A stretch of 64,000 nucleotides of DNA from Neoechinorhynchus agilis (lineage: Eukaryota > Animalia > Acanthocephala): contig CM121342.1 of the NCBI GenBank assembly GCA_051530055.1, forward strand, positions 9,129,480-9,193,479, read 5' to 3'. The translations under genes were made by a program, and so were the position numbers. Shown one piece after another: positions 9,735 to 59,049 of this stretch (within the stretch, counting starts at the first letter, position 1; each line of letters opens with the position of its first letter). The notes beneath the pieces were generated by a model, which was given only the letters and a program-made list of their open reading frames with translations, was not told the DNA's origin and did no database searches.

Positions 9735-10031
9735 TTACTGTTGCCATTGCTCCTCGTCTTCCTCTGAGGTATTGTCTTCTTGTAGCTCATTGAAAAGGCT
9801 TCTAAGTCCTTGATAAAATTCTCCAAGAGCTGGTGGAACGTATTCATCATCAGGGGTCCCGCTTATAACTGCAGAAATGATTTCATCGATAACAGCTATG
9901 TGATTAGCTACTTCCATTTGTTCTGTTGTATTGTCCGGTTCATTATCCTCGTTAAAAGTGAAATCCTCCTCATCAGAAGAGTCGCTAGGCCATTCATTGT
10001 TTGGTTGCTTTGGTATTGCTCTATCGCGCAT
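9735..10031 (-). CDS. 98-aa acidic protein, multi-copy cassette A (copy 1)
   Basis: Same 297-nt frame in 7 intact copies in the window. Upstream on the minus strand there is TATAAA (about 10160) and a CCAATCAG box (about 10235). Confidence 0.6.
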   Translation of the reverse strand: MRDRAIPKQPNNEWPSDSSDEEDFTFNEDNEPDNTTEQMEVANHIAVIDEIISAVISGTPDDEYVPPALGEFYQGLRSLFNELQEDNTSEEDEEQWQQ

Positions 10032-10389: not shown

Positions 10390-10651
10390 CCATTTTATAC
10401 TCAAAGGCAAAGAAGATGTTCTGCAGCGTAGGAACTACCGCGGCATCAAACTCATGTCTCACACAATTAAACTATGGGAACGAATGATCGATCACAGGAT
10501 CAGAGAAGAGATCCGAATCAGCGAGGATCAACGAGGATTTGTGCCCGGCAAAAGCACAATCGACGCAATATTCGTGCTCAGGCAGCTGTATGAGAGTTCA
10601 GTGAGATGCGTTGCTCGTTGGACAGTGTGTTCGTCGATTTGGAAGGGGCGT
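10390..10651 (+). mobile_element. RTE-clade non-LTR RT fragment
   Basis: NYRGIKLMSHTIKLWERMID...QRGFVPGKSTIDAIFVLRQL. Confidence 0.9.
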
Positions 10652-16350: not shown

Positions 16351-16647
16351 TTACTGTTGCCATTGCTCCTCGTCTTCCTCTGAGGTATTGTCTTCTTGTA
16401 GCTCATTGAAAAGGCTTCTAAGTCCTTGATAAAATTCTCCAAGAGCTGGTGGAACGTATTCATCATCAGGGGTCCCGCTTATAACTGCAGAAATGATTTC
16501 ATCGATAACAGCTATGTGATTAGCTACTTCCATTTGTTCTGTTGTATTGTCCGGTTCATTATCCTCGTTAAAAGTGAAATCCTCCTCATCAGAAGAGTCG
16601 CTAGGCCATTCATTGTTTGGTTGCTTTGGTATTGCTCTATCGCGCAT
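16351..16647 (-). CDS. 98-aa acidic protein, cassette A (copy 2)
   Basis: Protein identical to copy 1; part of the direct duplication 9474-10651 = 16090-17267. Confidence 0.6.
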   Translation of the reverse strand: MRDRAIPKQPNNEWPSDSSDEEDFTFNEDNEPDNTTEQMEVANHIAVIDEIISAVISGTPDDEYVPPALGEFYQGLRSLFNELQEDNTSEEDEEQWQQ

Positions 16648-17004: not shown

Positions 17005-18890
17005 TCCATTTTATACTCAAAGGCAAAGAAGATGTTATGCAGCGTAGGAACTACCGCGGCATCAAACTCATGTCTCACACAATTAAACTATGGGAACGAA
17101 TGATCGATCACAGGATCAGAGAAGAGATCCGAATCAGCGAGGATCAACGAGGATTTGTGCCCGGCAAAAGCACAATCGACGCAATATTCGTACTCAGGCA
17201 GCTGTATGAGAGTTCAGTGAGATGCGTTGCTCGTTGGACAGTGTGTTCGTCGATTTGGAAGGGGCGTTACGATACGGTCCCTCGAGATCTGGTGTGGGCA
17301 TGCCTCAGGAAAAGGAATTGTCCCGAACATTAAGCGATGTTTCGAGAATGCGATGGCACAGCGGAACGATGGACTTTTTCCGAGTCTCAGTCGGTCTGCA
17401 AATGGGGTTCGGCTCTTAGCCCATTCTTGTTCACGATCGTGTTAGACGTCCTCGTCAGCTGTGGAGCGTAAAGCTGTCGCATCTCTTCAAGAAGATTGGA
17501 CCATCAGAAAGATTTGTAGCAAGGAAGTGGACACGCTCAGAAATTTGCTGGAGAGTTGGCGACAGCGATTAGAGAGCAACGGATTGAGAGTGAGCAGGTG
17601 AAAAAATGATCAACCAACTGATTTGGGTACGAGATGCAACGGAGACGACCACTGGCTATTTGAGCGTCTAATGATTCCAAGATCCTCCATATTTTTGAAT
17701 TCGGATTTAGTAATAGCGAGTTTATCGAGCGGGAGGTGTCGCGGTCTAGCATGGAGTGGTTGTCCGTGTGTCTCAATAATGTGCTCCACTGCATGTTTGG
17801 TCAAAACGTCCGAAAAGGTAGGTCTCGTTATATCGGGGAAATCTGCGAGAATTTTACTAAATTCGTCGTTCTTCGATCTGCGAAAATCGACGCTGAGGGC
17901 TTCGATCGATACAGGAACGGAGGCTAATGGTATCGTTGCGAAAGTTTCTGCACTAACCAACTGCTTATTCCTTACGTCGACCAGTAAAACTGAGTGTCGG
18001 AGGAAATCAGCGCCTAGGATAGGGTGGTAAACCGCGGCAATAGTGAGCATCCATTCCGTGTGAGTTTTAGCGAAATTCAACTGCAGTAGCTTATTGCCGA
18101 ATGTTGGGATTATTGAACCGTTTGCAGCTGTAAGTGCTCTGCCAGGGTGTTTGGTCGGTTTATCGAGTGTTGTGGCTGGAAGGACGCTGATTTCGGCACC
18201 AGTATCCACTAGGAACCGTCGTAAAGTTTGGCGTTCGTTTAGGAAAAAGAGGCTATTGACAGAGGGACCGATCATCATTGCCTCTACTAATGATCGGTCA
18301 ATTCGTTACTTCGATATGCAAGGAATTCAGATCGAAAAGATCTTCAAATATTTGGGCAGCACGTTGAGCATGCAATGTGAGCTCACACCAGAGATCGGAC
18401 AAAGAGTTCAATGCGTGTGGAACAACTGGAGGAAGACAACAGGCATCCTTTGCGATAAGCTTCTCCCGAACAAGCTCAAAGGGCGGGTGTACAAGGCAGT
18501 AGTGCGACCCGCAATGCTTTACGGAGCAGAGACGTGGGCTACGAAGGAGGAAGACGTTCAACGATTAGCCGTCAACGAAATGGGGATGCTGAGATGGTCT
18601 GCAGGATTGACACGCAAGGATCGAGTGAACAATGAGGAGGTGCGAAAGCTGCTTGCTGTCGAGCCGATCGAGGAGGCAATCGCTAGGAGGCGGATGCGAT
18701 AGTATCTGCATGTGACCGCCTGGGTAAAGAGCGCATGGATAATCGAGCTCGAGGGGAAAAGGAGAAAAGGGAGACCCAAAAAGAGGTGGGACGACAATAT
18801 GAGCGGAGATTTCAAGACGCTGGGAAAGGCGAAGAACAAAGACGAAAGCCGACAATGCTGGAAAAACCACTTCTCAAGTGAGAGAAAAGT
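17005..18890 (+). mobile_element. RTE-clade non-LTR relic interrupted by a gypsy fragment
   Basis: RT motifs as at 10390, then FKYLGS..NKLKGRVYKAVVRPAMLYGAETWA..EMGMLRWSAG..RGRPKKRW. Confidence 0.9.
17612..18288 (-). mobile_element. Internal gypsy fragment (protease plus RT start), no LTRs
   Basis: FLVDTGAEISVLP, ILGADFL, WSSPLHLVPK; AATGATC direct repeats at 17605-17611 and 18289-18295. Confidence 0.88.
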
Positions 18891-20058
18891 TCAAAAAAAT
18901 GTTGTTGTTTATACTTGAATTGCTGTAAAAGATGAAGAGAATGTAGTTATTTATATATAAACCTTAGTAATTTCCATTAATTTAGTGTTTATTAATCAAT
19001 TCTGATTTTATAACTTATTAATTTCGCCTTTTAGAAATTCACATGTTATCAGCGAGAATATTCGAGAATTTTTCTTTAGTTTTACTGCAATCTTCTTTTT
19101 CTCTCAGAGATTGTAATTAGTAACCAAGTCGCATTCTAAAAGGAAATAAGTTCGATCGTGTTTTAATCGGAAATATCGCCCAGAAAAATATTCACACTCT
19201 ACGAAGAAGGTTTACTTGAACAGTCCCTTGTTTTGTTTTCTCTTTTATAACCATCAAAATCATCGGGAGCACTTGTATATCGCACAATCTCTTTATTTGG
19301 GTTGCCCATCCTCTGATATTGCAAAATTTGAAGATAAACTTATCGAAAGCGTTCTTAAATGTGTACGCGAATTTATATCACTGTTCAGGAGGACGATATC
19401 TCACGGCGAAGACCAGGCCCAAGATCGCTCAAGTACCTTAGGCTCTCTTAGCGGCCTTTTGTTCCAGGACCATCATGAGGTTTTTTATTTGTTTAGGTCC
19501 TTAAAGCCCGAGAACCCCGAGGTAAAAGTACAGTCCATTGTGAAAAGTTTTCTATCCATTGGTAGTTGGCCTTGGTAAAAAAATTCTTGTTTGAGCACCT
19601 TGTTTTCGTTGAGTTTAGAGCAAATCGCATGGATAGGAGAGTCATATCACGGAACATGGGGAGATCCAATAGTTTGCGACGGTCTGTTATGTCGTCGGCT
19701 CAACCTGTATGGGACTTATTAATTTTGCAATTCTGAATAAAGAACCGAGAAACGATGCCGAACAAAATAAGTTGCAAGGGTGAGCATTGAAGAAAGGTCC
19801 TCTTCGGGCGTCGAGAAAGATAGTTACACTGGATCAAAAGATATACCGCTTTTAATAATCAATCGAAGATGGGAGGAATATGTTCTCGTTTTAAGTGCTC
19901 CTGTGACGTATAACCCTCCAATGAAATAGTGCTTGAAGACTTTTTAACACTTGGAAACACTGCTCGCATTTTGCGGCCCATATTTCAGGCTCTCTTGATT
20001 CCACTTGTGAGAAAGGAGGAATTCTCGGCCTCCATTTACTTGTTCCTAAAAAAATGTT

Positions 20059-25939: not shown

Positions 25940-26160
25940 ATCCGGCTTCATTGATATCGTTTTCTGGATCTTCCTTGATATCGATTTCTGGATCTTCCTT
26001 GATATCGATTTCTGGATCCCCTCTTTACATCTTTTTCTGGATTCTCCTTGATATCGACTTCTTTATTCTCCTTTATATCGTTTTCTTTATTCTCCTTGAT
26101 ATCGTTTTCTGGATTCTCCTTTATATCGATTTCTGGATCTTCCTTGATATCGTTTTCTTA
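25940..26160. repeat. 21-bp minisatellite; the minus strand reads as (DIKE[N/D]PE[N/I]) heptads
   Basis: About 9-10 units of CCTTGATATCGATTTCTGGAT-like sequence. Confidence 0.85.
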
Positions 26161-29860: not shown

Positions 29861-30283
29861 GGATTATTTTTACCAAAATTATAAAAGATAAATGGTTGAT
29901 ACAGAAATGGACAATAAGCTAATGATTACAATTATCTCGGTAATGTAATTCTGCATTTTGGATTTAAACTATAATACCGATTTTGTTTTACGGATTATCT
30001 GTAAAAAATCGCAGACTTAAAAAGATTGAATTTCTTTCAGTTATTATGTTTCGTTTACATATTCAAATTTTTTTGCATTTGTTGAAATGTTTATATCAAA
30101 AATATTATGTGGGTTCGTTAAAATGCAGTTTATGATTCGCGTCTATGAATTTTTCGATGGCGTTTTATATTGAAATTACGATATGAACCGAAATTATGGT
30201 GTTTTCAATTGCATCTCTGAAACAAAAGCTCTGTATCAATATATTTAAAAAGAAATGGCGAATTTATAGAATTGGCGGAAATT

Positions 30284-30580
30284 TTACTGTTGCCATTGCT
30301 CCTCGTCTTCCTCTGAGGTACTGTCTTCTTGTAGCTCATTGAAAAGGCTTCTAAGTCCTTGATAAAATTCTCCAAGAGCTGGTGGAACGTATTCATCATC
30401 AGGGGTCCCACTTATAACTGCAGAAATGATTTCATCGATAACAGCTATGTGATTAGCTACTTCCATTTGTTCTGTTGTATTGTCCGGTTCATTATCCTCG
30501 TTAAAAGTGAAATCCTCCTCATCAGAAGAGTCGCTAGGCCATTCATTGTTTGGTTGCTTTGGTATTGCTCTATCGCGCAT
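30284..30580 (-). CDS. 98-aa acidic protein, cassette A (copy 3)
   Basis: Intact 297-nt frame. Confidence 0.6.
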   Translation of the reverse strand: MRDRAIPKQPNNEWPSDSSDEEDFTFNEDNEPDNTTEQMEVANHIAVIDEIISAVISGTPDDEYVPPALGEFYQGLRSLFNELQEDSTSEEDEEQWQQ

Positions 30581-31424
30581 CTCAGAATTGTAGAAAATGT
30601 TTGCTTGATTTGTTGGCTGCTGTAGAAAGATTGATGGTTGTATACTGCGCGATTTGTTTCACATACACGCGAAATAGGGGGTCCATTGATTCTCTTTATA
30701 TAAATTATTTATAGATCAGCGAGAGATCGGCGGTCATTTTATCTATTGTTTTTAATTTCATATCCTGTTTTCTTAGGGGAACCAATCAGCGTGCGCCGTT
30801 CGATGATATCTACGGGAACGGAGATTAAATTTCATTCTTTATCAAATAATTTGCGCTATTGACCGTAATCATGGCAGAAATTTAGAATTACAGGTCGAAT
30901 AATTCATAGACAATCAAAATCCTTTGTAACCAATGACCTAGTCGAATTCCAATAGAAAATCTGCCTAATGGGTTAAATTGACATTTGAATATTTCGTTCA
31001 AGTTTTGTTTAATTTAAAATGATCTTAAAAAAACTCGTTCCAAAATTGAAACTCACATTTTTGGATTAATTAAAGGTAGCCATTGAAATTAACAATATTA
31101 ACAGGTTTTTGTTGATGTTCAACAGATAAACCGACTGTGTGTATGTTTTTCCTTAACGTTCATCACAAACTTAAAATCAAATCATGTTCATTTTTTTGTC
31201 CATGACAATTAGTTATTCAAGAAATTCGTTGTCTTTGCAGAATCGCTAATTCGAAAATTTCAAATATGGAATTCGACGTCAAACAGATTTTTGTTGTTTT
31301 TTCAGCATTTATTTTTAAAATTTGTTGTTAAAAAGTTCGCGTAGAACGAATTTATGTCGTTCTGGGACTACTTGAAGCAGAATTCAAATTAGAGGACCAA
31401 TTGATATTATTAAAAATTACAATT

Positions 31425-31591
31425 ATGATAAGTTTTACACTTAAAGCGGTTGTAGAATCCAATGGTTTCCAATTTTTTTTAACAACGCCAACAAAAATTG
31501 TTACGCTGGATCAAAAGATGTTCCGTTGGCGATAATGAATCAAAGATGGAAGCAATATGTTCTCGTTTCTAGTGATCCCGTGACGTATTAA
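31425..31591 (+). pseudogene. Frameshifted copy of the 54-aa ORF C
   Basis: 8 T instead of 6 in the CAA-TTT-TTT-AAC run; this could also be a homopolymer read error. Confidence 0.4.
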
Positions 31592-31794
31592 ATTTGTTTA
31601 AAATTGACCTAATCGATTAGCGCTTCAAAATCAAATATTACTGCCATGCGCTAATTTGATTGATATTAAAATTCATTTGTTGTTTTTTAAATGATTGAAT
31701 AGCGACATTGACAAAAATTGAGGTTTAAAGTAGCAAAAGCTCTGTATCAATATATTTAAAACGAAATGGCAAATTTATAGAATTGGCAAAAATT

Positions 31795-32091
31795 TTACTG
31801 TTGCCATTGCTCCTCGTCTTCCTCTGAGGTATTGTCTTCTTGTAGCTCATTGAAAAGGCTTCTAAGTCCTTGATAAAATTCTCCAAGAGCTGGTGGAACG
31901 TATTCATCATCAGGGGTCCCGCTTATAACTGCAGAAATGATTTCATCGATAACAGCTATGTGATTAGCTACTTCCAGTTGTTCTGTTGTATTGTCCGGTT
32001 CATTATCCTCGTTAAAAGTTAAATCCTCCTCATCAGAAGATTCGCTGGGCCATTCATTGTTTGGTTGCTTTGGAATTGCTCTATCGCGCAT
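31795..32091 (-). CDS. 98-aa acidic protein, cassette A (copy 4)
   Basis: Intact frame with D17E, F24L and M39L relative to copy 1. Confidence 0.6.
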   Translation of the reverse strand: MRDRAIPKQPNNEWPSESSDEEDLTFNEDNEPDNTTEQLEVANHIAVIDEIISAVISGTPDDEYVPPALGEFYQGLRSLFNELQEDNTSEEDEEQWQQ

Positions 32092-32435
32092 CGTAGAATT
32101 GCAGAAAATTTTTGCTTGATTTGTTGGCTGCTGTAGAAAGATTGATGGTTGTATACTGCGCGATTTGTTTCACATACACGCGAAATAGGGGGTCCATTGA
32201 TTCTCTTTATATAAATTATTTATAGATCAGCGAGAGATCGGCGGTCATTTTATCTATTGTTTTTAATTTCATATCCTGTTTTCTTAGGGGAACCAATCAG
32301 CGTGCGCCGTTCGATGATATCTACGGGAACGCAGATTAAATTTCATTCTTTATCAAATAATTTGCGCTATTGACCGTAATCATGGCAGAAATTTAGAATT
32401 ACAGGTCGAATAATTCATTGACAATAAAAATCCTT

Positions 32436-32600
32436 ATGATAAGTTTTACACTTAAAGCGGTTGTAGAATCCAATGGTTTCCAATTTTTTAACAACGCCAA
32501 CAAAAATTGTTACGCTGGATCAAAAGATGTTCCGTTGGCAATAATCAATCAAAGATGGGAGCAATATGTTCTCGTTTCTAGTGATCCCGTGACGTATTAA
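32436..32600 (+). CDS. 54-aa ORF C (MISFTLKAVVESNG...RWEQYVLVSSDPVTY)
   Basis: Repeated in the array with synonymous differences; a diverged in-frame homolog lies at 19822-19929. Confidence 0.4.
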   Translation: MISFTLKAVVESNGFQFFNNANKNCYAGSKDVPLAIINQRWEQYVLVSSDPVTY

Positions 32601-32802
32601 ATTTGTTTAAAATTGACCTAATCGATTAGCGCTTCAAAATCAAATATTACTGCCATGCGCTAATTTGATTGATATTAAATTCATTTGTTGTTTTTTAAAT
32701 GATTGAATAGCGACATTGACAAAAATTGAGGTTTAAAGTAGCAAAAGCTCTGTATCAATATATTTAAAACGAAATGGCAAATTTATAGAATTGGCAAAAA
32801 TT

Positions 32803-33099
32803 TTACTGTTGCCATTGCTCCTCGTCTTCCTCTGAGGTATTGTCTTCTTGTAGCTCATTGAAAAGGCTTCTAAGTCCTTGATAAAATTCTCCAAGAGCTG
32901 GTGGAACGTATTCATCATCAGGGGTCCCGCTTATAACTGCAGAAATGATTTCATCGATAACAGCTATGTGATTAGCTACTTCCAGTTGTTCTGTTGTATT
33001 GTCCGGTTCATTATCCTCGTTAAAAGTTAAATCCTCCTCATCAGAAGATTCGCTGGGCCATTCATTGTTTGGTTGCTTTGGAATTGCTCTATCGCGCAT
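32803..33099 (-). CDS. 98-aa acidic protein, cassette A (copy 5)
   Basis: Intact frame. Confidence 0.6.
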   Translation of the reverse strand: MRDRAIPKQPNNEWPSESSDEEDLTFNEDNEPDNTTEQLEVANHIAVIDEIISAVISGTPDDEYVPPALGEFYQGLRSLFNELQEDNTSEEDEEQWQQ

Positions 33100-33952
33100 C
33101 GTAGAATTGCAGAAAATTTTTGCTTGATTTGTTGGCTGCTGTAGAAAGATTGATGGTTGTATACTGCGCGATTTGTTTCACATACACGCGAAATAGGGGG
33201 TCCATTGATTCTCTTTATATAAATTATTTATAGATCAGCGAGAGATCGGCGGTCATTTGATCTATTGTTTTTAATTTCATATCCTGTTTTCTTAGGGGAA
33301 CCAATCAGCGTGCGCCGTTCGATGATATCTACGGGAACGTAGATTAAATTTCATTCTTTATCAAATAATTTGCGCTATTGACCGTAATCATGGCAGAAAT
33401 TTAGAATTACAGGTCGAATAATTCATTGACAATCAAAATCCTTTGTAACCAATGACTTAGTCGAATTCCAATAGAAAATCTGCCTAATGGGTTAAATTGA
33501 CATTTGAATATTTCGTTCAAGTTTTGTTTAATTTAAAATGATCTTAAAAAAACTCGTTCCAAAATTGAAAGTCACATTTTTTGAATTAATTAAAGGTAGC
33601 CATTGAAATTAACAATATTTACAGGCTTTTATTGATGTTTATCAAGTTCAACAGATAAATCGACTGTGCATATGTTTTTCCTTAACGTTCATCACAAACT
33701 TAAAATCAAATCATGTTCATTTTTTGTCCATGACAATTAGTTATTCAAGAAATTCGTTGTCTTTGCAGAATCGCTAATTCGAAAATTCCAAATATGGGAT
33801 TCGACGTCAAACAGATTTTTGTTGTTTTTTCAGCATTTATTTTTAAAATTTGTTGTTGAAAAGTTCGCGTAGAACGAATTTATGTCGTTCTGGGACTACT
33901 TGAAGCAGAATTCAAATTAGAGGACCAATTGATATTATTAAAAATTACAATT

Positions 33953-34117
33953 ATGATAAGTTTTACACTTAAAGCGGTTGTAGAATCCAATGGTTTCCAA
34001 TTTTTTAACAACGCCAACAAAAATTGTTACGTTGGATCAAAAGATGTTCCGCTGGCGATAATCAATCAAAGATGGGAGCAATATGTTCTCGTTTCTAGTG
34101 ATCCCGTGACGTATTAA
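33953..34117 (+). CDS. 54-aa ORF C copy
   Basis: Intact frame. Confidence 0.4.
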   Translation: MISFTLKAVVESNGFQFFNNANKNCYVGSKDVPLAIINQRWEQYVLVSSDPVTY

Positions 34118-34320
34118 ATTTGTTTAAAATTGACCTAATCGATTAGCGCTTCAAAATCAAATATTACTGCCATGCGCTAATTTGATTGATATTAAAATTC
34201 ATTTGTTGTTTTTTAAATGATTGAATAGCGACATTGACAAAAATTGAGGTTTAAAGTAGCAAAAGCTCTGTATCAATATATTTAAAACGAAATGGCAAAT
34301 TTATAGAATTGGCGGAAATT

Positions 34321-34617
34321 TTACTGTTGCCATTGCTCCTCGTCTTCCTCTGAGGTATTGTCTTCTTGTAGCTCATTGAAAAGGCTTCTAAGTCCTTGAT
34401 AAAATTCTCCAAGAGCTGGTGGAACGTATTCATCATCAGGGGTCCCGCTTATAACTGCAGAAATGATTTCATCGATAACAGCTATGTGATTAGCTACTTC
34501 CATTTGTTCTGTTGTATTGTCCGGTTCATTATCCTCGTTAAAAGTTAAATCCTCCTCATCAGAAGATTCGCTGGGCCATTCATTGTTTGGTTGCTTTGGA
34601 ATTGCTCTATCGCGCAT
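34321..34617 (-). CDS. 98-aa acidic protein, cassette A (copy 6)
   Basis: Intact frame. Confidence 0.6.
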   Translation of the reverse strand: MRDRAIPKQPNNEWPSESSDEEDLTFNEDNEPDNTTEQMEVANHIAVIDEIISAVISGTPDDEYVPPALGEFYQGLRSLFNELQEDNTSEEDEEQWQQ

Positions 34618-34961
34618 CGTAGAATTGCAGAAAATTTTTGCTTGATTTGTTGGCTGCTGCTGAAAGATTGATTGTTGTATACTGCGCGATTTGTTTCACA
34701 TACACGCGAAATAGGGGGTCTATTGATTCTCTCTATATAAATTATTTATAGATCAGCGAAAGATCGGCGGTCATTTGATCTATTGTTTTTAATTTCATAT
34801 CCTGTTTTCTTAGGGGAACCAATCAGCGCGCGCCGTTCGATGATATCTACGGGAACGGAGATTAAATTTCATTCTTTATCAAATCATTTGCGCTTTTGAC
34901 CCTAATCATAGCAGAAATTTAGAATTACAGGTCGAATAATTCATTGACAATAAAAATCCTT

Positions 34962-35126
34962 ATGATAAGTTTTACACTTAAAGCGGTTGTAGAATCCAAT
35001 GGTTTCCAATTTTTTAATAACGCCAACAAAAATTGTTACGCTGGATCAAAAGATGTTCCGTTGGCAATAATCAATCAAAGATGGGAGCAATATGTTCTCG
35101 TTTCTAGTGATCCCGTGACGTATTAA
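34962..35126 (+). CDS. 54-aa ORF C copy
   Basis: Intact frame. Confidence 0.4.
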   Translation: MISFTLKAVVESNGFQFFNNANKNCYAGSKDVPLAIINQRWEQYVLVSSDPVTY

Positions 35127-35329
35127 ATTTGTTTAAAATTGACCTAATCGATTAGCGCTTCAAAATCAAATATTACTGCCATGCGCTAATTTGATTGATA
35201 TTAAAATTCATTTGTTGTTTTTTAAATGATTGAATAGCGACATTGACCAAAATTGAGGTTTAAAGTAGCAAAAGCTCTGTATCAATATATTTAAAAAGAA
35301 ATGGCAAATTTATAGAATTGGCGGAAATT

Positions 35330-35626
35330 TTGCTGTTGCCATTGCTCCTCGTCTTCCTCTGAGGTATTGTCTTCTTGTAGCTCATTGAAAAGGCTTCTAA
35401 GTCCTTGATAAAATTCTCCAAGAGCTGGTGGAACGTATTCATCATCAGGGGTCCCGCTTATAACTGCAGAAATGATTTCATCGATAACAGCTATGTGATT
35501 AGCTACTTCCATTTGTTCTGTTGTATTGTCCGGTTCATTATCCTCGTTAAAAGTTAAATCCTCCTCATCAGAAGATTCGCTGGGTCATTCATTGTTTGGT
35601 TGCTTTGGAATTGCTCTATCGCGCAT
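35330..35626 (-). pseudogene. Disrupted cassette A copy (copy 7)
   Basis: W14 TGG changed to TGA at 35585-35587, and the terminal TAA changed to CAA. Confidence 0.65.
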
Positions 35627-36487
35627 CGTAGAATTGCAGAAAATTTTTGCTTGATTTGTTGGCTGCTGCTGAAAGATTGATGGTTGTATACTGCGCGATT
35701 TGTTTCACATACACGCGAAATAGGGGGTCCATTGATTCTCTTTATATAAATTATTTATAGATCAGCGAGAGATCGGCGGTCATTTGATCTATTGTTTTTA
35801 ATTTCATATCCTGTTTTCTTAGGGGAACCAATCAGCGTGCGCAGTTCGATGATATCTACGTGAAGGGGGGGGATTAAATTTCATTCGTTATTAAAACGAG
35901 ATATTTAATCATATCAATAGCGCTTGTGACCTTAATCATGGCAGAAATTTAAACTCTCAGGTGGAATAATTCATTGACAATAAAAATCATTCGTAACTAG
36001 TGGTCTAGTCGAATTCCAAGGGGAAATCTGCCTAATGGGTGAAATTGAAATTTGAATAATTCGTTCTATTTTGTTTAATTTAAAATGATCTTGAAAAAAC
36101 TCGTTTTAAAATTGAAACTCACATTTTTTGGATTAATTAAAGGTAGCCATTGAAATTAACAATATTTACATTTATCAAGTTCAACAGATAAATCGACTGT
36201 GCATATGTTTTTCCTTAACGTTCATCAAAAACTTAAAATCAAATCATGTTCATTTTTTTTGTCCATGACAATTAGTTATTCAAGAAATTCGTAGTCTTTA
36301 CGGAATCGTTAGTACGAAAATTCCAAGTATGGAATTCGACGTCAAACGGATTTTTGTTGTTTTTTCAGCATTTATTTTTAAAATTTGTTATTAAAAAGTT
36401 CGCGTAGAACGAATTTATGTCGTCCTGGGACTACTTGAAGCAGAATTCAAATTAGAGGACCAATTAATATTATTGAAAATTACAATT

Positions 36488-36673
36488 ATGATAAGTTTTA
36501 CACTTAAAGCGGTTGTAGAATCCAATGGTTTCCAATTTTTAAATAACGCCAACAAAAATTGTTACGTTGGATCAAAAGATGTTCCGCTGGCAATAATCAA
36601 TCAAAGATGGGAGCAATATGTTCTCGTTTCTAGTGATCCCGTGACGTATTATGTTTGCTTAAAAATGACCTAA
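36488..36673 (+). CDS. ORF C copy with a lost stop and a short extension
   Basis: ..DPVTYYVCLKMT*. Confidence 0.35.
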   Translation: MISFTLKAVVESNGFQFLNNANKNCYVGSKDVPLAIINQRWEQYVLVSSDPVTYYVCLKMT

Positions 36674-37943
36674 TCGATTAGCGCTTCAAAATCAAATATT
36701 ACTGCCATGCGCTAATTTGATTGATATTAAAATTCATTTGTTGCTTTTTAAATGATTGAATAGCGACATTGACAAAAATTAAGGTTTGAAGAAACAAGAA
36801 CTCATAAATTTTCTGTTACCTCTGAATAAAACGCGGAACTCGGACGATGCATGGTGGAAGCCACCCATTAGACAAACACGATTAAACGCATTCCCTCGAC
36901 GATTGAACGGGTATCACTAATCAATTGAATTTGTCTAAAAATTGAAAGACGAATAACTCAGAAGATAGATTTAGAATCAGCACGTTGAGATGACTAAATG
37001 AACATAATCAATTTTTGCTAGATTTCGTATCAAAGTGGTACATCGCGTATTTTTGCTCGGATTTCGCACCTAGAGCCTTTATCCCGCATCGAAGGCGACT
37101 CGGCATTTGCTAATCCCTTCCTCCATTTTTCGATGTAAAAGGCTTTGTGGTGGGTGCAACCTCGAAACCGGAGGTTTGAGTGTAACGTATCGGAGGAAAT
37201 GTTGTTTCGGCAGGCCTTTAGGATGCTTCAGCCCTTCACCGGGAATTACTCGCTCGTAACTCGTGGCCATATTAACTTAAGCGAACCCCTCGCTTTTTGT
37301 CCCTGATCCGGACTGCACAAATATCTGTTCCGTATATAGTCATTATTTTTCCGGTCAAGCATGGTTGTGTCATTTATCCAACTCAACGTTTTCGTCTCCA
37401 TCGTCTATGGTCGCCATCGGCTGATAGTATTTAAAATGTTCAACGAGTGATAGGTCGATGTTGTTTATCGTGAGCGGATCTCTCTCTCTTTATTACCTGT
37501 TGTGAGACTCGAAACTCCTACAAAACAAAAGTCTGGTTGTGCAACGGGGGAACGCTGAATCCGTCCTGATTCAAAGCGCTGGTGTGAATGCTGGTAAGAT
37601 TTGGCCGAGAAAATAAATTTTTCAAAGCTCCTCACCGACAAAGTGAACCGACTTTTGCGGATATTTTTGTGTGTACCCAACCTTCTAATTTCATTTTTTC
37701 TATTTTGCAAAATCTGTCTTCTAGCGTCAAAAAGGCTGAGCGTTTGCGTTCCATATATCGTAATTTCCTGCGCAAACTGTCTCAGCAATTCTTGACAGCG
37801 TTCTTTACTTACGGACCGATAAGCTAGCTGAGAATTCGTTGTGTGGTCTCGGTCGGTCTTTTTTGAGGTCTTTCTTTACACAATGCAGCCGAACGTTGTC
37901 CTCTCGGATTCTGCCGTGCCGACTGTGACGTCATCAATTGTAG

Positions 37944-40919
37944 TTGGATTACCCTGTGCCCATCACACGACAACTGGACGACGTCGAGTTCAATGATGAT
38001 GACGCAAAGGCTTTACAACAACAGGCCGAGGTATCGAACCTCCGGGCCACTTCTTCTCCGAAAGGTTTTTGTTCGGAATGCGGTGGTTGTTTTTGCCTTA
38101 ACAAATCCTTGTTAGTTCGGATACACGGTCCCTTCAGATCCCGCTGTTCCGGTTCCTCCCGACCCCCAAGATCTGTCATCCCGAACCCACTACCTCCTCG
38201 GAATGTCCCAGCGCCTCAGGTCATTCCCACGAAATTCCCTGATATCTTGCGCGTTCTGCCCAGGAACGTCCTGAAACGGATCCCAAAGGGCCCTCGGTAT
38301 CAGATGACGAAGTCATTTAGTGCTTTGCTAAGGGATTGCTTAGAAAACGGGTCTGACATTGCATGGACACGTCTCTTCGCTTTCCCCAGGCTGGTTCTTC
38401 GTGCTGGTAACCGTTCGGAGGGGTCGTTGGTCAGTTCAATCAAAGAAAGAATCGCTTCCTTCGATCAACTCTTTTCGGACGCAATTCGAGCTGTCGATCG
38501 CGGACCTACAGAACAACCTACACACAGTAATTTTTCGGCTAGATCCATAGGGGAACGTGCTTCCTCCAAAATTGCGGATGGTGACATTCGGGGAGCTGTT
38601 CGCATCCTTTCCTCCTCTGAAGTTTTTACCCAGGTTAACGAGGAAACTCTCAAAACCTTGAACCAAAAACATCCTCCATCGGAACCACCGAAAATTCCGA
38701 CTTGCCTCGCGGCTGCCTCGAAGTCTCCCTGCTCTGTAAAGGAACTCAATTCAGCGATATCCTCCTTTGCTAGTGGATCCGGTCATGGGCTAGAAGGGCT
38801 TAGGCCTCAACACCTCAAGGACATGTTGTCCTTCTCCGTCGGTGAATCCGCTCAGAGCCTTTTGAATGGATTGTCACGCCTCGTTGATCTGTTCGTTGGT
38901 GACGAATTGCCTCCCGTCGCAATTCAGTTGTTCTTCGGCGCTTCACTCTGTGCCCCAAAAAAGAAAGACGGTGGGATTCGTCCCATCGCTATAGGATCGA
39001 CACTTCGGCGTCTTGCAGCAAAGATTCTTTGCAAACGTCTTGCAGTTGATCTTGGCGAACTTTTCCGCCCGGTACAACTCGGTTGCTGTGCGCCTTGCGG
39101 AGCCGAAGCTGTCGTGCACGCACTACGCTCCTTTTTCACAAACAGTTCAGAGTCCTGTGTTGTGCTCAAGTGCGACTTCCGAAACGCCTTCAACTGTGTT
39201 GATCGCAGTGTGCTCCTAGAAGCTGTCGTAACTTACGCACCGGAAGCATACCAGTATTTCCTCAACGCCTATGGGACTGAGACTCCTCTTGTTTTCAATG
39301 ACCGTACCATCTGGTCTCAACGAGGTGTCCAACAAGGTGATCCTCTCGGTCCTATCGGTTTCTCTCTTGCCGTCAACCGGATCGCTCATTCGCTCCAATC
39401 CAAGTTTAATGCTTGGTATTTGGACGATGCAACACTCGGTGGGTCTCCCTCCGTGGTGTTGCGAGATTTGGAGGTCGTCATGAGGGAAGCTGCCAAGCTC
39501 GGCGTTGAGCTTAATACCTCGAAATGTGAGCTGTTTGTGATGAATGCAGAAAACGCCGCTAGTCAAACTGAGATCCTCAACAGCTTTACGCAGCTAGCAC
39601 CTAACATCAAAATAATTTCGCGTGCTCAACTGTCTCTTTTGGGTAGCTGCGTTTTTAATGAAAATATACCTCAGGAGATCCTCCAAATAGCGCCGAGAGT
39701 CGAATTGCTCTGCGAGCGTACGAAGGAACTTCTATCCCATCAGGCATTATTTTTAATAAAGAGTGCCCTGTTCCTTCCGAAGTTGCTGTACAAGTTGCGT
39801 ACAACGCCCTTCTTCAAACATCGACACTCCTTGACGAAAATTGATGATAATTTAAGAAGGTGTCTCGAAGGGATTTTAAATATCCAACTGTCGGATGAGG
39901 CATGGAGACAAGCTTCCTTGCCTGTATCTTCCGGCAGTTTGGGTATTCGAAAAACAGCCGATGTTGCGATTCCGGCCTTTTTAGGTTCCTATGAGAGCAG
40001 CCGAAAGTTGGTAGCTAAATTGCTCGAAAAAGAGTTTTTACTTGATGAAAATTTTAAAGAGGCGGTCTTCGAGTTTTGCCGCATTACGCAGTGCGATGAA
40101 GTTACTTTGAGAGACAAAAGACGGTCAGTTTGGGGTAAACCTTTAATCACTCGAGTTCATGGCTCAATGCTTTCCGACGCGCGTGATGAGGTGACCCGAG
40201 CTAGATTGTTGGCAGTCTCTTCGAAGGAATCTGGTGCCTGGCTGAACGCCGTTCCGATTCCTTCTCTCGGAAATTCACTCAGAGACGAAACAGTAAAGAT
40301 CGGATTGTCCTTACGACTAGGTCTCCCGATTTGTGCCCCACACTACTGTCGTTGTGGGGCCCTTGTGGATTCTTTGGGTAGACACGGTCTCGTCTGTCGC
40401 CAGTCCGGTGGCAGGTATGCTCGCCACGCTGAGATTAACTCGGTTATTAGTCGGGCCTTAAACACGATACACGCACCGAATCTGCTCGAACCGAGTCACC
40501 TCTGCAGACTCGACGGTCGAAGACCGGATGGGGTAACAGTGTTCCCGTGGCGAGAAGGGAAATCCCTTCTCTGGGACGCTACTTGTGTGGACACCCTTGC
40601 TCTGTCCAATCTAAGACATTCCTCAAGGCGCGAAGGAGGTGCTGCAATTGCTGTAGAGGAACGCAGGTGCGGGAAGTACGCGGAGCTCTTGAGAGCACAT
40701 CACTTCGTCCCTTTCGGCGTTGAGACGCTCGGTGCCTTCGGTGCTGAGGCCAAGAACTTTACGGCGGATCTTTCAAGGAAGATGAGGATCGCAACCGGAG
40801 ACCCAAGAGCAGGAACGTTCTTCCTGCAAAACATAGGTCTCGCGATCCAGCGCGGCAACGCTGTAAGTGTCCTTGCGACGGTTCCGAATGGTAAAGAGAT
40901 GAATCTGGAAGGCTGGTAG
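37944..40919 (+). mobile_element. CRE-clade-like non-LTR retrotransposon, open 991-codon frame: N-terminal Zn finger, RT, CCHC-like motif, restriction-like endonuclease
   Basis: CSEC..IHGP..C, GIRPIAIG, DFRNAFN, GVQQGDPLGP, WYLDD, CRC..GRHGLVC..RHAEIN, RRPDG..WDATCVDT; A-run at about 40979-40987. Confidence 0.96.
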
Positions 40920-41774
40920 ATACATGAGACTTGATTTGCTGTGAGCTTAGTTTTTGCATGAATTAAATCTGACTAAGGAAAAAAAAGTTAAAGGCAATTT
41001 TATTTCTGTGGTGATACTTTTTGTTTAATTTTCCACCAGATTGAAAAACCTTCCTCAATTTTTACTATGATCTCATGTAGATTTTGATTTCAGAATCACG
41101 TATTGCATTTGTTCCCAGTTGTATGCAGACAATCTTTTATGATTGTTCGTATCCCAAAGTTCGAACTTACTTTTAAGTAAATTTTCAAGAATTCTGAGAA
41201 TGCAAATAGTCGTCCGTAGCCTCCTTTCGCCGTTTCCTTTTATTAAGGAAGAGAAAATTGCTGTGTTCCGATCAAATTTCGAATAAAAGCCGCCAATCCT
41301 TTTAATTCAACATCCGCAATCAAATTCGAACTAAATTTTCCATAAGTGGATTTCAGACTAGACTTGATTTGCTGTGAGTATATTTTCAATAAAGATTTGC
41401 AAATTAAAAAAAATGTGACAAAAACTATAAACATTGAGTGATTAATTTCTCAAAATGGTCATGTGAGTGTTATATCCACAAATATGGTGCCATCTTGGTC
41501 CCTCGAAAGCTATTTGACAATAAACATTGTCTAAAATGCAATAGTCTGCAAGCCGCAGAGTTACTTCAATTAAACGTTCATTTTTACAGCACAATTCCAA
41601 CACTTTTTACCTCCTAAACAAAGCCATCATAGGATGAAGGCAATGAGAATATCAAAATAAAGAAACCACAAACGATTTTTTTGCGAAAAGTGCGTTCAAA
41701 AAATCGGACATCATTCGCAAATGCGGGATTTAATGCGCTGACGGTGTTGCTCAAAAATAAACTCAAATCCGAGA

Positions 41775-42473
41775 TTAACGTAAACGATCATTTTCAGTAT
41801 TAACGGACCTTTGTTCAGTGTCATCCTCGTCGCTGGAAAGATTTGAAGTAAAGGTTACACCCATGTCTCTTATTGGTTTCGTCGATATACCACGTCCTTT
41901 TCTTAAATTCATCAAAATGGCCCTTCTCTCAGCATCTTCGGCATTGGAATCAATAAGATTATGGTCTTCTAATCGAGTCACCAAATTTTCTATAAAAATT
42001 CGTGTATGCTCGATCGAGCGAAACTCACATTTCATAGGGCCTATTATCCTTGTATTTAGGATCGCAACTATGCAAGCACAATCGTCCATGAGCAATTTCT
42101 TCGATAAGAATGGGAATTTGAGCAGATCTGCCCGAAGGAACTTTGTTTCTGGGTGGTCTTTTGCTATTTTAGCCATCTTCGTCAAAATCATATCACTTGT
42201 TGTAGGATTCTGATCTGTCCAAAAGAAGCACACGGACCGGCTGTTTTGTTTACAGTGTTCAAAGAAATCGTGTTCTCGTTCAAGAACACATAACTTCCCG
42301 CGTCCTTGTTCTAACCATTTTTCTCTATCCGCCTGACGTCTTTTTAATTCATTTATTCTTTGTTGACGAATAATACCGAGCTCGTTATCGTCAAGGTTTT
42401 TCATTCGTTCAATTTCGTTATCAATCTCATTTTCAACCAACTGCATAACAATTTTATCCACGGGAGCACTCAT
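41775..42473 (-). CDS. TXNDC9: Phosducin-like protein 3 / TXNDC9 family, copy 1
   Basis: LDDNELGIIRQQRINELKR..WLEQGRG..EHDFFEHCK..IAKDHPETKFLR..FPFL. Likely ATG at 42473; the track's longer start is GTG. Confidence 0.8.
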   Translation of the reverse strand: MSAPVDKIVMQLVENEIDNEIERMKNLDDNELGIIRQQRINELKRRQADREKWLEQGRGKLCVLEREHDFFEHCKQNSRSVCFFWTDQNPTTSDMILTKMAKIAKDHPETKFLRADLLKFPFLSKKLLMDDCACIVAILNTRIIGPMKCEFRSIEHTRIFIENLVTRLEDHNLIDSNAEDAERRAILMNLRKGRGISTKPIRDMGVTFTSNLSSDEDDTEQRSVNTENDRLR

Positions 42474-42954
42474 TATCCAGCAATTTCCTAAAAAAGAATT
42501 TAGCAAATACATCTTCCAATCGGCCGTGTTCACGTAATCAAAATCTCCGGAAGAAAGCTCATTTTAGTAACCAATGACGTCACAAGAAAATGTCGTCACT
42601 GCTATTGCGCATCACCAAATCGGTTGTTGTGTCTCGAAACGTGTTAAAATGCTTCCAGTTGACAATCACTCATCTCTTCTTGAGCTTAATCAGTGACGTT
42701 GTTAAAGTTTCATCCTCAATCACAATAAAATCTTTTTTCTATTTGAAGATCCTGAATTATTCATATTAAAATAAAGAAATAAAGTCGTTTGCTAAGAGTC
42801 GTACTGAGAAATTGAATTCTAGAATACATACCTGGAGGATTCATGCATAAAACTTCGATTTTAATATTTATCTAAATTTCTTCCACTTTTCTGTATTGGA
42901 AACGCTGAGATGCCTCGGAAAAGAAGTCGATTATTTCCTGCCCCATATCCCTGT

Positions 42955-43140
42955 TTCAGGGTCAAAGGGTTCGAATCCACGATCGCCAATGACGCACAAC
43001 CAAAGGGGACGAAATACCGCTGAAGGGAGGAAACTCACTGATGAGTCCCGCCTCCTGGAGGTATCTGAGGATCCGGAGAGATGTACGAACTCTTAACGTT
43101 TCATCCGAGTTTAAGTGGTTGCATCACTTCTCTGATGTAA
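42955..43140 (+). mobile_element. tRNA-derived SINE (5'-truncated) with a hammerhead-like core
   Basis: GGTTCGAATCC B box, CGCCA, then GGGGAC-GAAA...CTGATGA-GTCCC; homologous to 52311-52530. Confidence 0.65.
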
Positions 43141-43159
43141 AACAAAGTTTCTCTGATCG

Positions 43160-43620
43160 CCGAAAGTGCTAATTCACATCAATATACTCACGAACAAGAC
43201 CGAAATCAATCAAATGGATTATTTGTTGCGAATTTAATCGACATCCACTAACGAAATTCTCCGGTTTTATGTCACGGTGCACAGGAAATTTCTAATGCAG
43301 CGATTTTAGCCGTTGAAGGAATTAAAAAGCTAACATAAGAACTGGTTTCAACGTAGTGTAACGATTGTTGACCATTTGTAAAGTACTCAACTTTAGGTCA
43401 GCAACAGTTGCTTAAATGTTCGACTGTACAATTTAAAGATCATTTCTATGTTGTCTACCAATAAATAACCAATCATTGTTTTGAACAAGCCTTCACTAGT
43501 ATATTTGTAGATATTGCACTCGTGGAAGATGGTCTGAAATTTGCGATCCGCATCCTCAACAGTGATTGCCACTTCATTGTTTGTCTCCGAACTTCCTACT
43601 GCGAATAATCGTAGTTAAAT
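43160..43620 (-). pseudogene. Casein kinase 1-like pseudogene fragment
   Basis: [40 protein letters not shown], with stops and frameshifts. Confidence 0.75.
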
Positions 43621-44399
43621 CGTATTCTTCAACAAGCTCGAGAATCGTATCCATTCCGTCTTACGCCTTTTGAATTTGTGCCTATTTTAGCATCCCAAAT
43701 TTCTTGTGCTATTCTGGGCTCGACTCACTATTGACATGTTGGATTGCATACATCACGTAATCCAAATCGGTCAATCGGGATTTCATATAGTTCATGCTGG
43801 TAAATCAGCAAAAAACAGTTTGCGTCTTGTCTTTTTCCGAATATTCATTATTTGCTTCTTCCTCGGTCTTTGGCAAATCCCAAATCTTCATCTAAGGTTC
43901 CTTAACTGTAGTATTATACTTTGAGATCTTTTTCGCTGTCTGGCGTGGTAGGGCGGGGAGAGGGGACTTCCCCGAAGTATAGAAAGATCGTCATTTTTAC
44001 TCCCGCGAATCCCTTGGAGGCCGCTTCAAAATAAATATTGCCATCAACTAATTGAACTCCTAATATTGTGATGGAGCGTATAATTTATAAGAAAATAAGG
44101 CGTGGTAGATATAATACCTAAGTACCGAACGGCGTACAAGATTGTAGCTCCGAAAATAATCGGATTTAATAAAATTCCTTCAATTTTTCACCGCCGTAAA
44201 AACATTGTTGATTGTTCTATCAATGTCGAATTGTAACACACTCGAGCTATACTGAAATCTTCATTGCGAATTTTCAAGGCCTCCGCCTCCTTCTCAAACA
44301 TCGAAAAATGGTACCTAAGTTGGTAGCCTTGACTCGGGTGCGTGGGGACCGTCGATTCCCGAGGTGATGTTTCACCCCTGCGTAAAAGACCCATGGAGA

Positions 44400-45181: not shown

Positions 45182-48100
45182 TGACGTAACAATTATACGC
45201 GACTAATTCTTCGTCGCCATAATTCAGCCGCTTACTAATCCGCACGCACGTACGCATTCACGCATACCGTTATTTTTCAAGTTGAATAAAACTGTTTGTG
45301 TCCACCACAATTAATTCAACTTGAAAAAATCCCGTCTCATGGAAAGAGTTCTTTGTCCGGAAAAAAACTAACGATCGAACCGACTGCTCCTTCGTCTGAA
45401 CGTGAATACAAATATTGGAAGAAAACGTTTGACAATTTCGTAGCTGCATGTGGAAATCAATGTCCAGGCAAACTTCAATGTTTGATACGTTTCGTCAGTC
45501 CAAACGTATATGAAATGATAGCGGAGCAACCCGATTTTGATAAGGCGATTGCGATCTTGGACAAAGCATACATTAAGGAGGCGAATTCAATTCTTTCCAG
45601 ACATGTGTTGGCTACGTACCAGCAGCAACCATCTCAGTCAATCGACGAGTTCGTCCGAGAACTAAACTGCATAAGCCGAAACTGTCAGTTAACGGACGTG
45701 ACCGCTGAGCAATACCGACTAGAACTCATTCGCGATGCTTTTGTTAGTGGGATTTCATCCCCATAATTCGTCAACACCTTCTGGAACATCATGCTCTAAG
45801 TTTGACCCAGGCGATCGACATAGCGAAGTCTCTAGATACAGCTCAGCGAAACGCTGAAATTTATGACCGTCAAGCGCCGCCTATTGCAGCTTTTGTCGAA
45901 GCTCCTCCATCGATTTCGCACCAGAAGCCTGAAACCGAGGATATGGAAATAGTAACTGCCATAAAGTCAAAAAAGTGCTGGTTTTGCGGTTTTGATTTGC
46001 TTCCAAGATCTCGTTGTCCTGCCAGAAAGTCTAAGTGTTCGAAATGCGGAAAAATAGGCCATTGGGGTAAAGTATGTCGATCCAAGCCATTAGAAAAGCA
46101 GCCGGAGGGCACCTCCGCTACTATGTTTTTATGTGCCAGCGACGAGCTTGCAGATCTAAACAATCGAATGTTCCTTATCGACGTGGTCATTGAGGGACTA
46201 CCGTTATCTGCTATGATCGATACAGGTAGTTCGAGCAACTTTATTAGTGATAAGGTTGCCATGAATCTGGGACTAAAAACGATTGCATCGGAAGGTATAG
46301 TCAAGCTGGCTACAACAAGTCAACAGATTCGAATCAAGGGCAAATGTCTCGTCGACATTCTTGTGGAAAATCGAACTCATCATGCTGTCAAATTCAGCGT
46401 GTTGGAGGACCTTTATACGGACGTCATACTCGGTCTAGAATTTCAAAAACTCCACAGAAGCATTCGTTTTGTCTATAATGGTTCCAAAGATGAATTGACA
46501 ATCAAGCCCCTATCAGACTGTAGCAACATGATCAAAGCTGATATGTTGGAAACCCCATTGTTTGACTCGATCCCTCGGAATATTAAGCCTGTTGTGACCA
46601 AATCGCGAATGTTTAGTGTTCAAGACCGTTCGTTTATCGATGGTGAAGTAAAAAAGTTACTTTATGCAGGCGTGATAGAACCTAGTCGATCTCCGTGGAG
46701 ATCACAGATTGTAGCCGTCAAAAACGACTCGAATTCAGGCAAGAAGCGACTAATTATTGATTATTCGCAGACTATCGATAGATTTACTTCGTTAGATGCT
46801 TACCCATTGCCTAACCTTCACCAGCTTATTAATACCATCGCTCAATACCGCGCATTTTCGACCTTCGACTTAAAAAGTGCATATCATCAAATCGGCATAC
46901 CTGCTTCCAAAAGACGGTACACCGCTTTCGAAGAGAATGGTAATCTTTACCAATTTACGCGTATACCTTTTGGCGTTACAAACGGTGTCGCCGCATTTCA
47001 AAGGGCGATGGATAATATGATTAAGGAAAAGAATTTGGAGTGTACGATTTCATATCTAGATGATGTTACTGTAGCAGGTAAATCGCAGGAGGAACACGAC
47101 TCGAATGTAAAGCTCTTTATGGAAGCTGTCGAGAAACGGAAGTTGAATTTAAATCATTCCAAAACTATATCGTCGGTCCGATCTATCAATCTAATGGGTT
47201 ACAACATCTGCAATGGAAAGATTCGGCCCGATCCGGAAAAACTACGCCCCTTATTTGAAATGCCTATTCCTTGTGATTCAAAAAGTCTAGCTCGAGTGCT
47301 CGGAATGTTGGCCTATTACTCAAAGTGGATCCAGGACTTTTCGTCGAAAGCTCAAATACTCCATAAATGTAGTAAATTTCCGATGGAAACCGATGAGATC
47401 AGAGTTCTCAAAGAATTGAAGGAAGAGTTGGGAAACGCATCCTTGGGTGCTATCGACGTGGATAGCCCATTCACCGTCGAATGCTACGCGTCTGATGTTG
47501 CTGTTTCGGCCACACTGAACCAAAACGGAATACCTGTGGCCTTCATGTCCAGGACGCTCAACAAGTGCGGGATGCGATATCCTGCCGTCGAAAAGGAGCC
47601 GATGGCAATCGTCGAAGCTGCCAGAAAGTGGCGACCTCTACTGAATGGGAGACGTTTTCAGCTTATTACTGACCAACGATCGGTAGCTTTTATGATGGAC
47701 GGTCGCTGACGAACCAAAATTAAGAACGACAAGATTCTAGGCTGGAGAATTGAGCTCTCTGACCTCTGCTATGAAATTCCTTATCGCCCTGGCAAAGATA
47801 ATATCGCTGCGGATGCGTTATCGAGGGCCAATGCAATCGACCTGACTGACTTAGAAGAGGTTCACAAGCAGCTCTGCCACCCTGGAGTCAGTAGGTTACT
47901 TCATTTTGTCAGATCGAAGAACTTACCATTCTCTACATCCGAGGTCAGGTCGATATGCTCGAAATGCAGAACGTGCGCTTTTGTCAAACCGCAGTTTTAC
48001 AGACCCTCCGTGGACTCCCAACTGATACAGGCATTAAAGCCGATGTATAGGGTATCGATTGACTTTAAAGGCCCACTTCCGTCCCGTTCTTCCAACAAGT

Positions 48101-53875: not shown

Positions 53876-54172
53876 TTACTGTTGCCATTGGTCCTCGTCT
53901 TCACCTGAGGTATTGTCTTCTTGTAGCTCATTGAAATGACTTCTAATTCGTTGATAAAATTCTCCAAGAGCTCCTGGAATGTATTCATCATCAGGGGCCC
54001 CACTTATAACTGCAGAAATGATTTCATCGATAACAGCTATGTGATTAGCTACTTCCATTTGTTCTGTTGTATTGTCCGGTTCATTATCCTCGTTAAAAGT
54101 GAAATCCTCCTCATCAGAAGATTCGCTGGGCCATTCATTGTTTGGTTGCTTTGGAATTGCTCTATCGCGCAT
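53876..54172 (-). CDS. Diverged 98-aa cassette A copy (copy 8)
   Basis: Same length, about 9 aa changes, upstream CCAATCAG retained (about 54385). Confidence 0.6.
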   Translation of the reverse strand: MRDRAIPKQPNNEWPSESSDEEDFTFNEDNEPDNTTEQMEVANHIAVIDEIISAVISGAPDDEYIPGALGEFYQRIRSHFNELQEDNTSGEDEDQWQQ

Positions 54173-56400: not shown

Positions 56401-56462
56401 TCATAAATGCAAAGTAGGGCATCGGTTGCAGAAAATCTATTGACGTCCAGAAAGATGCTAGA

Positions 56463-58894: not shown

Positions 58895-59049
58895 GTATTT
58901 TGTCTTTATGCGGCCCTCAGCGGCGGTTGTTGCTCCCCTTTCGGTTTAAAAGTTGCGAATTTTATGTTGTTTGAAGATTGAATTGTTCATATAGGTTTTT
59001 TTCTGGCGTAGAAATTAAAATTATTTTATTTTTTAAATCCGATATTTGG

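Follow-up and report, generated by a model that had tools for sequence, protein, structure and literature searches.

A two-length tandem array in Neoechinorhynchus agilis that appears to be a young local expansion of a single orphan gene

The 64,000 nucleotides of the acanthocephalan fish parasite Neoechinorhynchus agilis analysed here (the window; contig 2, 9129480-9193479, of a 46.2-Mb, 102-contig assembly) contain at 30223-36791 a tandem array of five units whose lengths alternate between 1.5 kb and 1.0 kb. Long units consist of three blocks, A (~702 bp), B (498-507 bp) and C (~309 bp), and short units of A and C. Block A carries the gene of interest, a 98-codon open reading frame (ORF) on the minus strand that lies within a 124-codon open frame; a 54-codon ORF is found on the plus strand of block C. 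The draft genome rests on Nanopore, some HiFi, Illumina and Hi-C data and was annotated with BRAKER using mRNA-seq (PMC12690905).

Repeat finding identified the units as direct repeats with start-to-start distances of 1511, 1008, 1518 and 1009 bp, followed by 1526 bp in the register of the C side, and block-wise BLAST gave the order of the blocks. The spacings, together with a junction that is identical in both short units, confirm an array of head-to-tail units with a repeating multi-unit pattern. An earlier sequence-only reading of this region had described the same alternation, with A on the minus and C on the plus strand, diverging around a CCAAT-containing region and converging on the next unit, and the geometry was found as described. 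Likewise, its estimate that the loss of B sets the C start codon about 140 bp from the CCAAT box agrees well with the 139 bp measured for C2 (ATG at 32436, CCAAT at 32293-32297). The features of the array and its left border are the following.

30223..36791, no strand: whole tandem array, A1-B-C1-A2-C2-A3-B-C3-A4-C4-A5-B-C5, from repeat spacings and block-wise BLAST
29950..30222, minus strand: ancestral 3' flank of A1, a probable 3' untranslated region (UTR), from its identity to dispersed copies and RNA contig ends
30284..30580, minus strand: A1 coding sequence (CDS), 98 amino acids (aa), intact
31795..32091, minus strand: A2 CDS, 98 aa, intact; protein identical to A3, core of NCBI model ACOME3_006737
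32803..33099, minus strand: A3 CDS, 98 aa, intact; probable RNA contigs over 32731-33310
34321..34617, minus strand: A4 CDS, 98 aa, intact; matches the variants of RNA contig X2-9
35330..35626, minus strand: A5, a pseudogene copy; TGG>TGA at codon 14 (35585-35587), normal stop also lost
32092..32435, minus strand: 5' region of A in unit 2, kept in all copies; TATA-like motif at 32207-32225, inverted CCAAT at 32293-32297
30925-31422, 33444-33950 and 35992-36485, no strand: B spacers, the natural upstream flank of A, deleted from the two short units
31423-31733, 32434-32741, 33951-34259, 34960-35268 and 36486-36791, no strand: C blocks, carrying the 54-codon plus-strand ORF
33953-34117, plus strand: C3 ORF, 54 codons
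31425, 32436, 33953, 34962 and 36488, plus strand: ATGs of the C ORFs

Decay at the edges of the array, also part of the earlier description, was seen in all three instances: besides the stop in A5, C1 has a +2 frameshift caused by a two-base insertion within a T run, and C5 has lost its stop and reads through seven extra codons to a length of 61.

The protein encoded by A is acidic, with 27 Asp+Glu and 4 Lys+Arg over its 98 residues. Its N-terminal third is predicted to be disordered and contains runs of Ser, Asp and Glu. AlphaFold2 modelling with the paralogue alignment left residues 1-33 unstructured and placed helices at 34-57 and 67-87, with a mean pLDDT of 60 (low confidence); both helices are predicted to be amphipathic. 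As a guess from its composition and this model, the protein might be a small intracellular binder of basic partners that acts via the helix pair and acidic, probably phosphorylated tails.

A six-frame search of the assembly recovered 14 copies of A, all of them on contig 2 within 240 kb (9.037-9.277 Mb). The frame is intact in 10 of the 14; three copies contain premature stops and one is truncated, in accordance with the birth-and-death amplification that had been proposed before. Between diverged copies the CDS is 95% identical, the 5' region 85-87% and the 64 bp at the 3' side 87.5%, and the ratio of nonsynonymous to synonymous differences per site (pN/pS) is 0.1-0.6 in most pairs of A. A 5' region of ~340 bp accompanies every copy; counted back from the ATG, it has a TATA-like motif at 109-128 nt and an inverted CCAAT at ~200 nt. 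RNA contigs stop at positions equivalent to -86, -184 and -211 from this ATG. Judged by these sequence comparisons, A is likely to be a working protein-coding gene with selection acting on the protein.

Transcription of A is also likely. Three runs of one study, resembling mRNA-seq of the same species and comprising ~20 million letters of contigs each, yielded probable RNA contigs that cover A (32731-33310), as the earlier interpretation would have it, and the deposited annotation made use of mRNA-seq, of which 74 libraries are published for the species (PMC12690905). In two of the runs the contigs have extensions of 113 and 208 nt past the block boundary (32742), and these extensions start with the 30 letters found at 30195-30222; as they enter A1's own left flank, they show an A1-type copy with the ancestral 3' UTR. 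The contig breaks at 33141 and 33148 were considered as the acceptor of a putative 47-nt 5' intron (GTATGT..ACAG) that NCBI model P0002 uses; this was rejected, because no spliced joint is reported and the breaks match a paralogue variant (ctacag versus cagcag).

Matches to A at 90-100% identity were obtained among NCBI hypothetical proteins of N. agilis (ACOME3_006731, 006737, 006742 and others). A word-based protein search returned N. agilis proteins only, and neither Pfam nor the ESM atlas nor, by profile search, the PDB gave a match. An exhaustive profile HMMER search against 1.84 billion representatives recovered the A family itself plus two repeat proteins (E ~3e-4) and nothing else. These weak matches, P0010 and P0011, were rejected as relatives of A because they are repeat proteins, the tested one with an hhalign probability of 6%. 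Thus A appears to be an orphan, species-restricted gene of N. agilis with no detectable relatives outside the species; few acanthocephalan genomes are present in the databases, so the searches do not fix the depth of its taxonomic restriction.

Eight of the 14 copies of A lie inside the window, five in the array and three dispersed. At least seven of the 14 have no C block within 1.5 to ~9 kb, and C is confined to the five array units, an inverted two-copy duplicate and one 103-bp patch. The dispersed features in the window are listed here.

9735..10031, minus strand: intact dispersed copy of A that lacks both B and C; its twin at 16351-16647 is 98.5% identical over 1.2 kb
53876..54172, minus strand: dispersed copy of A with greater divergence (90% protein identity), lacking both B and C
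19809..19911, plus strand: only older relative of the C block, 103 bp, 82% identity, C codons 20-54

The 103-bp patch sits 2.8 kb right of a dispersed A copy, past a retrotransposon fragment with a protease-like ORF, and its flanks are unalignable. Outside the window, the inverted A-B-C-A duplicate at 9275.7-9277.5 kb of contig 2 has the frameshift of C1. This mini-array (L028:7441-9538; contig 2, ~9.2754-9.2775 Mb) has a mosaic history, with 99% identity to B3 in its B and 86-95% identity to A3 in its A blocks. In one of the two A copies most of the 5' region is gone and codon 96 is a TAA. Another neighbour, L024:9016-9975 (contig 2, ~9.0365-9.0375 Mb), is a 960-bp copy, at 98.75% identity, of the left flank of the array plus the 3' part of A1; it ends at codon 8 of A and is a recent partial segmental duplicate ~120 kb off.

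Genome-wide, B was found beside A copies only. It follows the A block in L026, L025 and L028, and in the dispersed copies L026 and L025 it is present while C is absent. Since B occurs only next to A, including dispersed copies that have no C, it is best seen as the natural upstream flank of the gene and not as an insertion; a mobile-element origin of B was rejected on the same distribution. The A unit was also considered as a transposon and rejected, as the shared flanks vary in extent and no terminal repeats were seen.

The borders of the units indicate how the array was built. Homology of A2-A5 to A1 ends 61 bp past the stop codon, at the start of the tail of the preceding C block. The ~270 bp left of A1 (29950-30222), absent from A2-A5, are 92-99% identical to the dispersed copies 9413, 16024, L026, L027 and L024. 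Tandem duplication of one [A, B, C] segment explains these borders, as it should leave a first copy with the original 3' flank, a last C that passes into the original right flank, and breakpoints 61 bp past the A stop on the left and at the end of the C block on the right.

In the scenario we propose, a 1.5-kb segment made up of A from 61 bp past its stop, the ~340-bp 5' region and the upstream B and C would have been duplicated head to tail. By this step C, as upstream flanking DNA, would have been set behind the next A copy, where it replaced the original 3' flank. A single 509-bp deletion would then have dropped B from one unit. Because the A|C junction is identical in both short units (A2|C2 and A4|C4), B was probably lost once and the short unit afterwards copied together with its long neighbour, which gives the 2.5-kb period. 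Copying of this short-plus-long pair by unequal crossing-over would produce the order long-short-long-short-long, and gene conversion or recent exchange would maintain the likeness of the copies in the centre, with drift and breakage at the edges.

The differences between the units fit such a history. The closest pair of A blocks is A2 and A3, with 3 differences over 702 positions. A4 shows 16 differences to either of them, A1 shows 18, and A5, which also has a 21-bp indel, shows 25-36 (28 to A3); C2 and C4 differ at 2 positions and C3 and C5 at 10, and B5 and C5 are the most diverged copies of their blocks. Arrays that exchange sequence usually have such a homogenised centre and drifting edges. 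No greater similarity was seen between units one super-period apart than between neighbours (A2-A3, 3 differences; A2-A4, 16). The recurrence of variants with a 2.5-kb period, as suggested by the sequence-only reading, is accordingly seen in the structure, namely in the deletion junction common to both short units, and not in a clean pattern of similarity. The GCT/GTT codon in C on which it drew is only partly periodic, with GTT in C3 and C5 and GCT in C1, C2 and C4. Taken together, the array appears to be a young local expansion of the single orphan gene A through ordinary tandem duplication.

In three independent contexts the homology between A copies also breaks at almost the same point, ~340 bp upstream of the ATG and no more than ~8 bp from block position 700: the short-unit junction (32435), the 9674/16290 pair (10391) and the 53815/L027 pair (54512, L027:9445). 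In unit 2 the homology stops near 32430-32435. This limit possibly marks the upstream end of what a copy needs to survive, or else a fragile site. A 5'-truncated non-long terminal repeat (non-LTR) retrotransposon frame (...NYRGIKLM) at 10390-10460 and 17006-17075 abuts two of the dispersed A copies at their upstream end, exactly where the A homology stops.

The 54-codon ORF in C is most likely non-coding flanking DNA and no partner gene of A. When the 1221-bp non-coding portion of a long unit was shuffled 2000 times with its dinucleotides preserved, 66% of the shuffles contained an ATG-initiated ORF of at least 54 codons, so the C ORF is no longer than expected by chance; an open frame of at least 67 codons was present in 82% of them. 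In the only older comparison, C3 and the patch at 19809-19911 show 19 differences over 103 bp, distributed 7/6/6 over the codon positions, with a pN/pS of 0.91, and by this measure the divergence of C appears neutral. The C ORF varies at 9 sites over 165 bp, a frequency similar to that in the remainder of the block, and a frameshift is common to two of the six C copies. A collection of 5.8 billion proteins, in which the NCBI models of A from the same annotation are present, contained no C-like protein of 30-94 residues, and C had no match in Pfam or the ESM atlas. The locus tags of the A models in the cluster listing run from 006735 to 006738 and suggest that no gene model lies between the A models. 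In view of these results and of the A copies that have no C, a co-amplified two-gene module, the core of the earlier interpretation, is not supported.

None of the probable RNA contigs lies on the B spacer, and the C block is covered by weak, low-depth contigs at 33951-34238 in two of the three runs and by none in the other. A is covered up to 33310 and C from 33951 onwards with zero cover over 33332-33941, and the idea that C is driven from a shared promoter finds no support in this pattern, a gap in strandless contigs proving little by itself. The C-block RNA is most likely the new 3' end of internal A transcripts, a step that we infer from contigs carrying no strand; in our scenario it would be the replacement 3' end of the minus-strand transcripts of the array-internal A2-A5. 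In run X2 the contig over A enters the C tail by 11 nt. At 34238, where the C contig stops, it adjoins a site that is variable between copies and would break a de Bruijn contig.

A different view of C would make it a real small protein gene, perhaps de novo, that was co-amplified with A, diverges from the shared CCAAT region and became more strongly coupled to it by the loss of B. Its ORF is indeed intact in C2-C4 and open in C5, the frame is open in the old patch, ATTAAA motifs follow the C stop in the plus-strand direction, and one of the RNA fragments on the C block begins 3 nt before the ATG. A leader of 3 nt, however, is insufficient for normal initiation, and the chance length of the ORF, its neutral divergence with two of six copies frameshifted, the lack of a protein of similar length in the collection that holds the A models, the absence of C beside most A copies and the lack of RNA contigs from the promoter region to C make this view very improbable. 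Alternatively, the C block might yield a non-coding plus-strand RNA over the 3' end of the next A transcript, so that double-stranded RNA (dsRNA) and small RNAs dampen the family. The convergent geometry with ~200 bp from the C stop to the next A stop, the presence of RNA contigs on both A and C and the transposon-rich region would suit this mechanism, but the C signal is weak and missing in one of three runs, and a single minus-strand transcript accounts for the same cover; we consider it unlikely. For the short units, where the deletion of B put the chance ORF C <140 bp from the CCAAT box, one may also think of a newborn divergent gene or RNA whose overlap with the next A copy at its 3' end would let it feed back through dsRNA, a speculation to which we attach very little weight. 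As to A, the family could be transcribed, untranslated and decaying and contain no protein gene at all. This would agree with the pN/pS near 1 in some pairs, the four of 14 copies that are broken or truncated, the failure to find relatives anywhere and the low confidence of the fold. On the other hand, 10 copies retain the 124-codon open frame with their flanks diverged by up to 10%, the CDS is more conserved than either flank, pN/pS is low in most pairs, and the conserved 5' region with its TATA and CCAAT motifs travels with the ORF; we judge an untranslated family improbable.

Several observations nevertheless weigh against our reading of an expanded protein-coding gene A with non-coding C as its flank. 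The 27 variable sites in A split 10/5/12 by codon position, comparison of the array with the 53879 clade gives a pN/pS near 1, and the synonymous sites of A are more alike than the flanks, so that part of the conservation of the CDS may come from gene conversion. The three runs are guessed, not known, to be RNA. The C block lies under contigs in two of them, with the fragment mentioned above starting within 3 nt of the C ATG, and with strandless contigs a separate plus-strand C transcript and convergent overlap keep a low probability. The X2 contig over C has the variant pattern of C4, yet the X2 contig over A matches A4, which is followed by C3 on its 3' side; this combination suits the 3' UTR reading poorly, although the individuals sequenced are not identical to the reference. 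Finally, the patch at 19809-19911 ends exactly at the last sense codon of C, at GTAT; it might be what is left of an exon end, or else a short tract of conversion or repair. It is extremely improbable that the array or its copy number is an artefact of assembling a repeated region. The hybrid assembly of Nanopore and Illumina data, for which worms were pooled (PMC12690905), and the near-identity of A2 and A3 might invite that suspicion, but each unit can be told apart by substitutions and indels (identity between B5 and B3 is 90%, and A5 has its 21-bp indel), short-read DNA contigs contain the A|C and B|C junctions, and DNA contig depths rank A > C > B, as the assembly predicts, a depth uncalibrated for copy number and used for this ranking only. 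In the DNA run concerned, which may be the sample behind the assembly, one contig joins 33441>33951 and skips 509 bp, i.e. the short-unit junction, and other contigs cross B and B|C; both unit types are thus present in the short-read data.

The locus accordingly seems to belong to a known kind of system, the tandem expansion of an orphan gene, here with a two-unit super-period generated by unequal exchange. Tandemly duplicated, taxonomically restricted families evolving by birth and death with gene conversion are the general model, and the array shares with them its local head-to-tail and inverted duplicates within 240 kb, the mixture of intact and broken copies, the alike centre with diverged edges and the lack of relatives outside the species. 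There is no essential difference, the alternating length being the outcome of one internal deletion and the later copying of two units together. With satellite higher-order repeats, which arise by unequal crossing-over, it has the 2.5-kb super-period of two units and the common deletion junction in common; it differs in having only five, gene-bearing units and in A2 being nearest to A3 and not to A4. Toxin-antidote or drive gene pairs and multicopy clusters of the germline (e.g. peel-1/zeel-1, wtf, Stellate/Su(Ste)), invoked by the sequence-only reading, likewise are multicopy, fast-evolving, species-restricted loci in transposon-rich surroundings. In contrast to these, a second gene is not supported in the array, most A copies are without C, and no membrane, toxin or known domain was found; C turned out to be neither a constant companion of A nor a second coding gene, and no result here points to toxin-antidote or drive biology. 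The architecture is ordinary and requires no new mechanism. Its value lies in a documented young, transcribed, species-restricted gene family for a little-studied parasite genome, and in a stepwise example of how a two-length tandem array can form by duplication, one deletion, pair duplication and conversion.

The remainder of the window contains further elements; a search of its whole length against Rfam returned nothing. Retroelement frames surround the array at 37944-40919, 45802-47709, 62970-63761 and 17610-18278. Directly to the right of the array is a 991-aa frame with a reverse transcriptase (RT) domain only, and the other frames nearby comprise an LTR-type pol with protease, RT and RNase H as well as RT and protease fragments. 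An inverted pair of 2.4-kb sequences at 41410-43848 and 56462-58901, with 99.7% identity, presumably reflects a mobile element that has recently been copied. Positions 1-1664 hold a satellite-like array of ~187-bp period whose copies are 97-98% identical, and a 24-bp tandem repeat of 8.6 copies (TTGATATCGTTTTCTGGATCCTCC) lies at 25951-26158, in frame as 8 codons. On the minus strand at 8103-8762, 1 kb from a dispersed A copy, there is an intact 219-aa ORF for a Ras-family small GTPase (Pfam Ras, E 2.6e-47).

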